Shown piece by piece: positions 26,849 through 58,539 of a DNA stretch of 64,000 bases. The stretch comes from Gracilinanus agilis (taxonomy: Eukaryota), in the NCBI RefSeq assembly GCF_016433145.1, contig NC_058132.1, positions 163,346,438-163,410,437 of the forward strand, given 5' to 3'. Each line of letters starts with the position of its first letter. The first letter of the stretch is position 1. The notes under the pieces were generated by a model, which saw only the letters and a program-made list of their open reading frames with translations, was not told the DNA's origin and did not search any database. Both the position numbers and the translations under genes were made by a program.

Positions 26849-27685
<837 letters not shown>

Positions 27686-55944: not shown

Positions 55945-56215
55945 TTCCCACTGGACTTTATTGAGTAGGGGAGTGAAATGATTGAATCTGTATTTTAGGA
56001 AAATCACTTTAGTGGCTGAAGGGATGATGGATTGGAGTAGGGGGAGATTTGAGGAAGGTGGATCCACCAGCAGACTATTGCAGTAATATGTGTGAGGTGA
56101 TGAGGGCCTGCAGTGGTGGCTGTGCCAGAGGAGTGAAAGGGACAGGTATAGGAAAGTTTTTGTAGAGGTGAAATTGATAGGCTTTGGCAATAGCTTGATA
56201 TTAGGAATTGTGTCC
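55945..56215 (-). mobile_element. L2 fragment
   Basis: gtagggagtgaaatgattgaatctgtattttaggaaaatcact L2 motif. Confidence 0.6.
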
Positions 56216-56524
56216 AAGGGAAGATGAAGGAATTCGGAGGGAGAGGTATCTTGTTCTCAAAAGGTCTAATTCAAGAGGAAGTTCCCTTTATAGTATGATA
56301 TATTCAAGCCATCTTCCTATACATGGACATCATGTACTATTTGGGAAGGGACAGAGATAAGGAACTGGTCAATGAATCCTGTAAGTAGGAGTAAGAAACA
56401 CCAACTTGCTAGTTGGGAGTTACGCATAGTTCAGACAGAACAATGCCAAGAGAGTTTTCATACTGAGGTCATAATTCCCTAGAAATTAATGTGTGTATGG
56501 GGAGGGATGAGAAAGTCAGGGCTT

Positions 56525-56649
56525 CTAGAGTCTATTACAGTAGTTTCGACCCAGACAGCATTGAAATTCATATTCCTTGTTATTTATCAATCTTCTTACT
56601 GTCCTGCAATTGGTTTTACATGACATCGTTGCAACTTGTAAGATTCCAT
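56525..56649 (-). CDS. PATE/ACRV1-like Ly6 protein, last exon (NGILQVATMSCKTNCRTVRRLINNKEYEFQCCLGRNYCNRL*)
   Basis: Acceptor cattttcctAG; C-x3-C-x15-CC-x5-CN LU-domain C-terminus; TAG at 56525-56527. Confidence 0.93.
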
Positions 56650-56975
56650 CTAGGAAAATGGGAGACAAACATTTCCAAGGGTCTAGATTAGAGAATTCAA
56701 GATAATTACAATGGCCATCTCCATTCCTTTCCCCTCCAGCCCTGATGATATAGGAAAATTTACTTGAAAAGCTTTTACCTTTTGTTTAGGATTGTCCATG
56801 GGAACACACCTCCCAGGGATCCCTGAACTAACAGGATTATTCCTGGATGCTCCACCGGCATGACCACTAGGAGTCTCCCTAGCCCAGGAACTGAGATGCC
56901 CAAAGCCACAACCCACATGAGTCTATCAAGATTACTTCAGACCTAATCAGTCCACCTTCCCTTTATTCCACCTAC

Positions 56976-57101
56976 TATAATATAGTTTCATAGTTGAACA
57001 GCTCTCATCGGGCTTTGCAATACAGGTACCAAAGCCTGTTTCACACTTTCCATTTTGAGTCATCATTTTGCATGTTGTACATTTCAGAGTGAACGTAAAG
57101 C
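56976..57101 (-). CDS. PATE/ACRV1-like Ly6 protein, LU exon (GFTFTLKCTTCKMMTQNGKCETGFGTCIAKPDESCSTMKLYY)
   Basis: Acceptor ttctgttatgcAG, donor GTAGGT, phase 1-1; C-x2-C-x8-C-x6-C-x7-C. Confidence 0.93.
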
Positions 57102-57217
57102 CTGCATAACAGAAAACAGGGTGTGAATGCTAAGCTGCCAAGTGACTCTGGTTGTTATGGAAGCTGGAAAGCTGTTTTGGGGAAATCTGGGGTCCCATTC
57201 TCTGCAACCAACCTTAC

Positions 57218-57262
57218 CTATGACCACACTAGTCTGTCCTTTCCCAGAATTTTTCTTCCTTG
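57218..57262 (-). CDS. PATE-like gene, 45-nt symmetric mini-exon (ARKKNSGKGQTSVVI)
   Basis: Acceptor ggtttcAG, donor AG|GTAAGG, phase 1-1. Confidence 0.7.
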   Translation of the reverse strand, partial: QGRKILGKDRLVWS

Positions 57263-57353
57263 CTGAAACCATGGGAAGGGACAAGCAGAGAGGAGGACAG
57301 GAGATGACTGAAGAAGACTCACAGTAGAAGAAGGCACAACTCCCATTCTCTAC

Positions 57354-57425
57354 CAATGGCTTCCTTGTTAGTTCCAAGGGCAGTAAGCCCAGCCTCAGTT
57401 CCAGACTCCTCAAAACTAGCACAGT
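57354..57425 (-). CDS. PATE-like gene, candidate 72-nt exon (DCASFEESGTEAGLTALGTNKEAI)
   Basis: Acceptor ctttcctcccAG, weak donor TG|GTAGAG, phase 1-1, open frame. Confidence 0.45.
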
Positions 57426-57518
57426 CTGGGAGGAAAGACTTAGTAGTCCTCAAATGGGTGTGGAGAAGGGCATTAGTATCTAGAGAGAAGAAAATAGTTC
57501 CTTGTAGTCACTCCTTAC

Positions 57519-57615
57519 CAGACTTAGCATATTTACTTGAATCCTTTACATTTGATTCCCAAGACCCAGTCCATGTGAAGCAGAGAAGAGAAATGCCTAA
57601 GAGAAGCTTGTCCAT
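57519..57615 (-). CDS. PATE-like gene, exon 1 with signal peptide (MDKLLLGISLLCFTWTGSWESNVKDSSKYAKS)
   Basis: agaagATGG start, hydrophobic core, donor G|GTAAGG phase 1. Confidence 0.88.
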
Positions 57616-58539
57616 CTTCTATCAGTGTCCTCAGTCCTGGAGCTGGCCGACTTGGAGGGGGCAGTGGCTTTGGATATTACTTGGAGTAGACCTTGAAGGG
57701 AACTGAGAGCCTCTCTAATGTCAGATGCCCCATGGGTAGCTTCTTCTTTCCACCAATAGGAAGGTGCTTGTGATCAGTGTGGCAGGACTGTGACTGATCA
57801 ACTGATACCTTAGTAGGAGGCAAGGAAACATCCCTGGGGCTTATAGAAGAGGGTGGAGAACACAATCTGAAAGGCTCAGCTCTCTAGTTCATTTTGTATC
57901 CCTTATCATGTCCTAACAGTAGAGGAGAGCTAACTTCATTTGGAGCCAAAGGGTAGACTTCTCTTATGAATTACTAGATGTGATTAGTTTCTTGCAGTCA
58001 AGCTATCTAAGGAAGGGGTATTGGGGATTGGCTTCAGAGGGTTTATGATCTCTCTCTTTTTTTTTTTTTTCTCTCCTTTTAGGAATGTTAGTATCAGACT
58101 TTTCCTTGGGAAAGAAATTCGGTTTTGGAGTCACTAGGCTGGAGTGAAGATTATTTTCTCTACTGGATTCCTTTTGGGCAAATATGGGAAACTTTAGTGA
58201 GCCATTCATTTTTCTTCTTTCTGGATGAATGTCAAGGGTGGTTGGCCTACTATGGTAAAGCTTTTGCTCCAGAAAGTTTTAATTTCTTGCAGATGGGTTC
58301 AATAGAGTTGTAAATGTGTCATCAGGTTTTCTTTTCTCAGAATTTTAAAAGTCCTGTTAAGAGAAATTCATAGCCTTTGGTCCTAGTTCCATTGGAAATA
58401 TTTCAAGGATAAGATCTTTATCTTCTGTTTCTTTTAAAATTATTTTTTTCTGGACTATACATGTATTATCATGTAAAACATTTCATTTTTATATGTGAAT
58501 AATCTATAAAAACAAAACCCCAAACACATACCCAAATAG

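Follow-up and report, generated by a model that had tools for sequence, protein, structure and literature searches.

A putative PATE3-type gene and its decayed tandem paralogue near HYLS1 in Gracilinanus agilis

The window analysed here, a 64,000-nt stretch of contig NC_058132.1 from the marsupial Gracilinanus agilis, carries on its minus strand a compact multi-exon gene, termed copy A, which is probably (at about 0.72 by our own estimate) a functional marsupial member of the PATE family and an orthologue or co-orthologue of PATE3. The family comprises rapidly evolving three-finger proteins that are secreted in the male reproductive tract. Support for copy A as a gene comes from the gene structure legible in the DNA, the intactness of its domain, its homology to PATE3, its syntenic position with respect to HYLS1 and PUS3, and exons 3 to 5 that are free of indels in a relative diverged by ~8%. 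A tandem paralogue, copy B, serves as a control for what the locus looks like when it is no longer maintained: copy B is visibly decayed, whereas copy A has kept every cysteine, splice site and reading frame.

Exon structure and cysteine pattern of copy A

Copy A extends from 57615 to 56525 on the minus strand (positions are those of the window throughout). Its exon borders, their phases and the spacing of its cysteines were taken straight from the DNA, with each exon translated singly, and gave the following features, in which a slash marks the donor junction.

57615-57519, minus strand: exon 1, 97 nt, with the ATG at 57615, donor G/GTAAGG and a phase-1 end; its product is MDK and a 10-residue hydrophobic core (signal peptide), then ~14 polar, K/S-rich residues
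57425-57354, minus strand: candidate exon 2, 72 nt, phase 1 to 1, one Cys, donor G/GTAGAG
57262-57218, minus strand: exon 3 (mini-exon), 45 nt, phase 1 to 1, a long pyrimidine tract before the AG, donor G/GTAAGG
57101-56976, minus strand: exon 4 (first LU exon), 126 nt, phase 1 to 1, donor A/GTAGGT, Cys 1-5
56649-56525, minus strand: exon 5 (second LU exon), Cys 6-10, ending in CN and two residues before the TAG at 56527-56525
57841-57848, minus strand: TATA-like element TCTATAAG, ~230 nt upstream of the ATG, kept in copy B; a consensus match only

The predicted reading frame comprises 130 codons without the 72-nt segment and 154 with it, the split codons being A (exon 1/3), G (3/4) and N (4/5), or D and A at the junctions formed when the segment is included. 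Translation of the exons thereby reproduced exactly the open frame of 130 or 154 amino acids described in the original prediction, and all five of its junctions (57519, 57425, 57262, 57101 and 56649) were correct when the minus strand was read from 57750 to 56400. Because every internal exon is phase 1 to 1, internal exons can be skipped without loss of frame, and a direct join of exon 1 to exon 4 (115 codons) is equally open. Splicing of these exons, use of the mini-exon included, is predicted. The gene had also been described as invisible to the ORF track and indeed, since each of its exons is short, an ORF listing overlooks it, returning only scraps of 35, 39 and 47 aa across the locus.

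Together, exons 4 and 5 encode ten cysteines with the spacing C-x2-C-x8-C-x6-C-x7-C-x17-C-x3-C-x15-CC-x5-CN, which translation and a pattern search recovered exactly as first claimed. All homology and domain searches were made exon by exon. Exon 4 alone matched the Pfam UPAR_LY6 family (PF00021) at 25.2 bits, against a gathering score of 24.8 (E 2.3e-5), with positions 3-36 of the 82 in the profile covered; Pfam returned no match for exon 5 by itself. A profile built from eleven PATE3 proteins and run on all 2844 stop-to-stop pieces of the window recovered both exon 4 (E 2e-14) and exon 5 (E 7.6e-7). The exon pattern of copy A is far beyond chance.

With regard to the flanks of the gene, TCTATAAG may possibly be the core promoter of copy A. 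The 562 nt after the stop codon contain no canonical AATAAA; the first one stands at 55962, just past a repeat. In the sequencing contigs of the related species discussed below, depth over 56000-56073 is ~650-2300 as against ~10 over the gene, with many loose ends, and 56148-56221 is likewise flagged, the mark of an interspersed repeat of high copy number that lies ~450 nt beyond the copy A stop.

Kinship with PATE3 and the HYLS1 neighbourhood

An exhaustive HMMER search was run with the exon 4 peptide against 1.84 billion representatives at a cut-off of E<0.001, a route chosen because a word-index search misses any protein longer than 1.75 times this 41-aa query. Only four representatives matched. 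Three of them are named PATE3 or PATE3-like by NCBI (platypus and two Phyllostomus bats, with echidna inside the platypus cluster), and the fourth is an unnamed translated product of a Logan contig; identity between exon 4 and the PATE3 matches in the library was 43-49%. HMMER had been put forward alongside the original prediction as a check, and as run with the exon 4 peptide its named matches were PATE3 or PATE3-like throughout.

The alignments point the same way. Placed as separate rows against monotreme PATE3, exons 4 and 5 align without gaps, at 44% identity in exon 4 and 36% in exon 5, and their cysteines all fall opposite those of PATE3; the N-terminus of exon 1 aligns with the MDK/R-x-LLL start of the platypus, echidna and bat proteins, copy A sharing the MDK-x-LLL signal-peptide start. 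Like PATE3, copy A ends on CN and one or two further residues without a GPI signal, and it occupies the chromosomal neighbourhood of the family. The spacing had been said to match PATE3 nearly; the kinship holds, but "nearly" understates it, as the spacing is identical to that of monotreme PATE3.

In the word-index search, platypus PATE3 alone retrieved only itself, platypus PATE3 with the exon rows retrieved only platypus, and the PATE3 alignment with three exon peptide rows retrieved bat and monotreme PATE3 only. In the ESM Atlas, the three nearest clusters include PATE3, the others being toxin-like LU proteins. Against solved structures, a profile combining PATE3 and the copy A exons gave weak matches to SLURP1 and PSCA (E 0.13-0.37), with GPIHBP1 also marginal. 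SLURP1 and the snake three-finger toxins resemble copy A in being secreted single-LU-domain proteins without a GPI anchor, but they are distant relatives encoded at other loci, and copy A is no venom gene.

The signature of the PATE family has been given as C-xx-C-x7-8-C-x6-C-x7-8-C followed by C-x3-C-x15-16-CC-x4-5-CN (PMC3316536). Copy A conforms to it with C-x2-C-x8-C-x6-C-x7-C and C-x3-C-x15-CC-x5-CN, and its signal peptide aligns with those of PATE3 and is combined with the lack of a GPI-anchor signal. PATE1 and PATE2 share this motif and belong to the same cluster, but they do not appear among the exon 4 matches at E<0.001. With every named match being PATE3 or PATE3-like and the spacing that of monotreme PATE3, copy A is, to judge by homology, a PATE-family gene that stands closest to PATE3.

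The neighbourhood was anchored by two conserved genes.

6416-7519, minus strand: HYLS1 single-exon ORF, 367 aa, Pfam HYLS1_C at E 5.9e-39; the synteny anchor
9634-10707, plus strand: PUS3-like ORFs, after HYLS1

HYLS1 and the PUS3-like ORFs lie in the same window, 49 kb from copy A, while ACRV1 and DDX25 fall outside it; in human, HYLS1 and PUS3 flank the PATE genes. In rat, mouse and human, the PATE cluster is located between ACRV1 and DDX25 (PMC3316536), and the same placement is given elsewhere (PMC4839075). The claim of a ten-cysteine Ly6/uPAR PATE gene adjoining HYLS1 is thus borne out jointly by Pfam, the PATE3 profile, the family motif and the HYLS1 ORF.

Other features of the window deserve brief mention. 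The N-terminal half of the HYLS1 ORF contains several tandem units of ~14 residues (LPVH-x-RY-x-QEE-like) ahead of the HYLS1_C domain; an RPS4 retrocopy with an undamaged ORF of 263 aa, in which Pfam recognises all five S4e domains, lies at 26894-27685 on the plus strand; and a run of N occupies 1786-1915. Regular expressions, tblastn with 12 PATE3 proteins and the PATE3 HMM found no LU exons in the window beyond those of copies A and B. Weak matches near 29.9-30.3 kb (E 0.7-9) showed nothing of the cysteine pattern and were dismissed as noise, and the same LU-exon searches found no PATE4-like locus between HYLS1 and copy B.

Copy B and the DNA of a related species

The second LU locus of the window is related to copy A to a degree that differs sharply along its length.

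40727-39682, minus strand: copy B, a tandem paralogue, 17 kb from copy A
Identity of copies A and B, 5' part: exon 1 96%, intron 1 99%, 72-nt segment 96%, intron 2 100%
Identity of copies A and B, 3' part: intron 3 90%, exon 4 65%, intron 4 84.5%, exon 5 61%

Copy B has lost cysteines 4, 5 and 10, carries an in-frame TAG directly after the CC pair, and has suffered a 41-nt deletion that removes the mini-exon. It is a pseudogene. Upstream, a comparison by eye put the region to ~57900, TATA-like element included, at ~92% identity between the copies, and copy A has ~51 extra nucleotides relative to copy B at 57631-57683 on the minus strand, in what is presumably the 5' UTR, immediately before the ATG.

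In terms of Jukes-Cantor (JC) distance, the LU exons of the two copies are separated by 0.47-0.55, the far upstream flank (74% identical by blastn) by 0.32, and the adjoining introns by 0.11-0.17, intron 4 standing at 0.17. For the LU exons, dN/dS was ~1.1 and dS 0.475, values that allow only a modest claim of acceleration because the synonymous sites are few (44.5) and blastn flank identities are biased upward. The pattern looks like an old duplication: gene conversion would since have evened out the 5' half and the introns, and the LU exons would have retained, or acquired, a divergence greater than that of neutral DNA. A fuller scenario would have PATE3 remodelled and then duplicated in the didelphid lineage, a shifted donor and the exonisation of 45 nt giving rise to the basic tail, followed by conversion and by LU exons that outpace their introns as in snake three-finger toxins. 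We offer this sequence of events tentatively and consider it, as a whole, rather unlikely.

A search of sequencing runs returned no RNA run that contains the copy A stretch. Four runs flagged "RNA?" did align to 56000-58200, but their contigs run without interruption over introns and exons at ~92% identity (record 21, for example, covers 56956-57527), which marks them as genomic DNA from a related species. No splice joints in the copy A gene were found in these four runs across 56000-58200. The "RNA?" label on them was a guess and is not expression evidence for the region.

These contigs provide a second comparison for copy A. The gaps of record 21, eight letters in total, fall at 57290 (3), 57331 (2) and 57334 (1) in intron 2, at 57505 (+1) in intron 1, and at 57385 (1). 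The relative thus shows five indels in ~570 nt around the exons, versus none in exon 3 and exon 4 (record 21) or in exon 5 (record 3, 0 gaps). Substitutions could be followed among the differences listed, which reach up to 57032, with exon 1, exon 3 and the 5' half of exon 4, where a stop codon in the relative is conceivable, lying outside that range. At 56525-56626 in exon 5, the relative has five differences, two of them synonymous and the others L>V, E>D and I>V, and all cysteines there are kept. This divergence of 4.9% is lower than the 9.5% of the adjacent 3' flank (12 differences in 126 nt), a contrast that is not significant but is suggestive of constraint on exon 5.

Alternative readings, predicted product and significance

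One alternative reading treats copy A as ACRV1-like, or as a member of an otherwise new subfamily, intermediate between PATE1 and ACRV1, in which a regulated 72-nt exon supplies a free cysteine for dimerisation. ACRV1 (SP-10) does share a ten-cysteine C-terminal LU domain with copy A, and its gene lies at one end of the PATE cluster (PMC3316536, PMC4839075). The 72-nt segment is likewise open in phase, bordered by AG and GT, and present in both copies. Nevertheless, not one ACRV1 protein appeared among the exhaustive exon 4 matches at E<0.001 in the 1.84 billion representatives, where all named ones were PATE3, and the link to ACRV1 drawn in the original prediction, along with the label "ACRV1-like", is left unsupported by that absence. 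ACRV1, an acrosomal matrix protein, is much longer and has an extended, repeat-rich N-terminal region; the spacer of copy A amounts to ~30 residues at most and is unlike it. The segment itself fares no better. Its donor, G/GTAGAG, is the weakest of the gene, and its 96% identity between the copies is no better than the 99-100% of the flanking introns. The 1-nt deletion at 57385 in record 21 also falls inside it, and since no compensating indel accompanies that deletion, inclusion of the segment would shift the relative's frame. The stretch once proposed as an optional exon with an unpaired cysteine is thus most likely intronic rather than coding, and we hold the ACRV1-like reading to be highly improbable.

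For a gene of PATE3 type, the discrepancy that has to be explained is the N-terminal spacer. PATE3 elsewhere is a three-exon gene of ~98 aa, a description that fits the monotreme and most eutherian genes, in which nothing separates the signal peptide from the LU domain (PMC3316536, PMC4839075), and for that reason no homologue supports the spacer of copy A. In copy A the exon 1 donor lies ~14 codons further downstream, the predicted mini-exon would add 15 more, and the locus is tandemly duplicated with one copy dead. This is a structural difference and not evidence against homology; PATE1 is reported to have five exons and PATE2 four (PMC3316536, PMC4839075), so extra small exons do occur within the family. 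Part of the spacer appears in any model: the sole phase-compatible donor of exon 1 is 57519, ~14 codons past the signal peptide, and as there is none near the end of that peptide, even the shortest model (115 codons) retains a polar tail of ~14 residues, one absent from monotreme and bat PATE3. Two other donors were considered and rejected, namely AAT/GTAAAG, a phase-0 site after which exon 4 runs into a stop, and GG/GTCTTG, a poor site in phase 2. The mini-exon is predicted to encode 14 full codons that are basic and rich in K, R, S and G. If it is intronic, the canonical product of a true gene would come from three coding exons, exon 1 joining exon 4 directly, and the spacer would shrink to the 14-residue tail of exon 1. 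That arrangement would agree with the three exons of every retrieved PATE3 and of most PATE genes (PMC3316536), it is frame-neutral given the phases, and the mini-exon is deleted in copy B, although the deletion says little because copy B is a pseudogene. Against it, the mini-exon owns both the best acceptor tract and the best donor (G/GTAAGG) of the gene, and the relative's contig crosses it without an indel, versus three in the adjoining intron 2. The 115-codon product is therefore a real possibility but a somewhat unlikely one, and the basic N-terminal spacer, with the mini-exon, remains part of the predicted product. A different objection is that copy A is intact by accident, being silent or recently inactivated, for instance through a dead promoter, with disabling mutations yet to come. 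The want of a matching RNA run and of a nearby polyadenylation signal would fit such a gene, its tandem sister is already a pseudogene, so that the lineage does lose such genes, and turnover of the PATE family between species is fast (PMC4839075). However, copy A retains ten of ten cysteines, its start and stop codons and four pairs of splice sites despite a 35-39% difference from copy B in the LU exons, the relative's exons 3 to 5 are indel-free beside five indels in their flanking introns, and the exon 5 changes listed are synonymous or conservative. We accordingly regard accidental preservation as improbable, and a functional PATE3-type gene as the better description of copy A.

The precursor encoded by such a gene would be ~130 aa long, with a cleavable signal peptide, a short and strongly basic K/S-rich spacer (the exon 1 tail and the mini-exon), and one ten-cysteine three-finger domain. 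Because the protein stops two residues after CN, it is predicted to lack a GPI anchor and to be secreted. A residue count made one exon at a time gives the mature product a net charge of ~+12; the rat PATE proteins are likewise cationic (PMC3316536). Eutherian PATE proteins suggest by analogy that its most likely source is the epididymis, testis or accessory glands, from which it would pass into the luminal fluid and bind, by way of its three loops, a partner on the surface of sperm or other cells. Among the PATE proteins, which are enriched in the epididymis, there are modulators of nicotinic receptors and members with effects on sperm ADAM3 (PMC6744855, PMC4839075). In the mouse, deletion of part of the PATE cluster abolishes the passage of sperm into the oviduct, and Pate1-3 are dispensable for fertility (PMC6744855); given that dispensability, copy A may be expected to have a role that is subtle or redundant.

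Copy A appears to be unannotated in protein collections, as no marsupial protein matching its exons was found in the exhaustive search (best identity 49%) or in two profile word searches with the exon peptides, bearing in mind that the word searches need shared 5-mers and cover proteins of 54-171 aa, and that a representative library hides the members of 50% clusters. Similarly, a literature search returned, within the library searched, nothing on PATE genes of opossums or other marsupials.

Taken by itself, copy A is an ordinary new member of the PATE family that leaves knowledge of the family unchanged. The locus nevertheless fills an annotation gap, namely a PATE3-type gene with the monotreme cysteine spacing in a marsupial, and the finding of that spacing on the marsupial side suggests that the PATE3 type predates the monotreme-therian split. 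Should the spacer be confirmed, it would provide a modest case in which a donor shift and exonisation have created a new N-terminal extension. Finally, if the tentative account of remodelling and duplication were true, the pattern of exons evolving faster than introns that characterises snake three-finger toxins would be seen in a mammalian reproductive gene.
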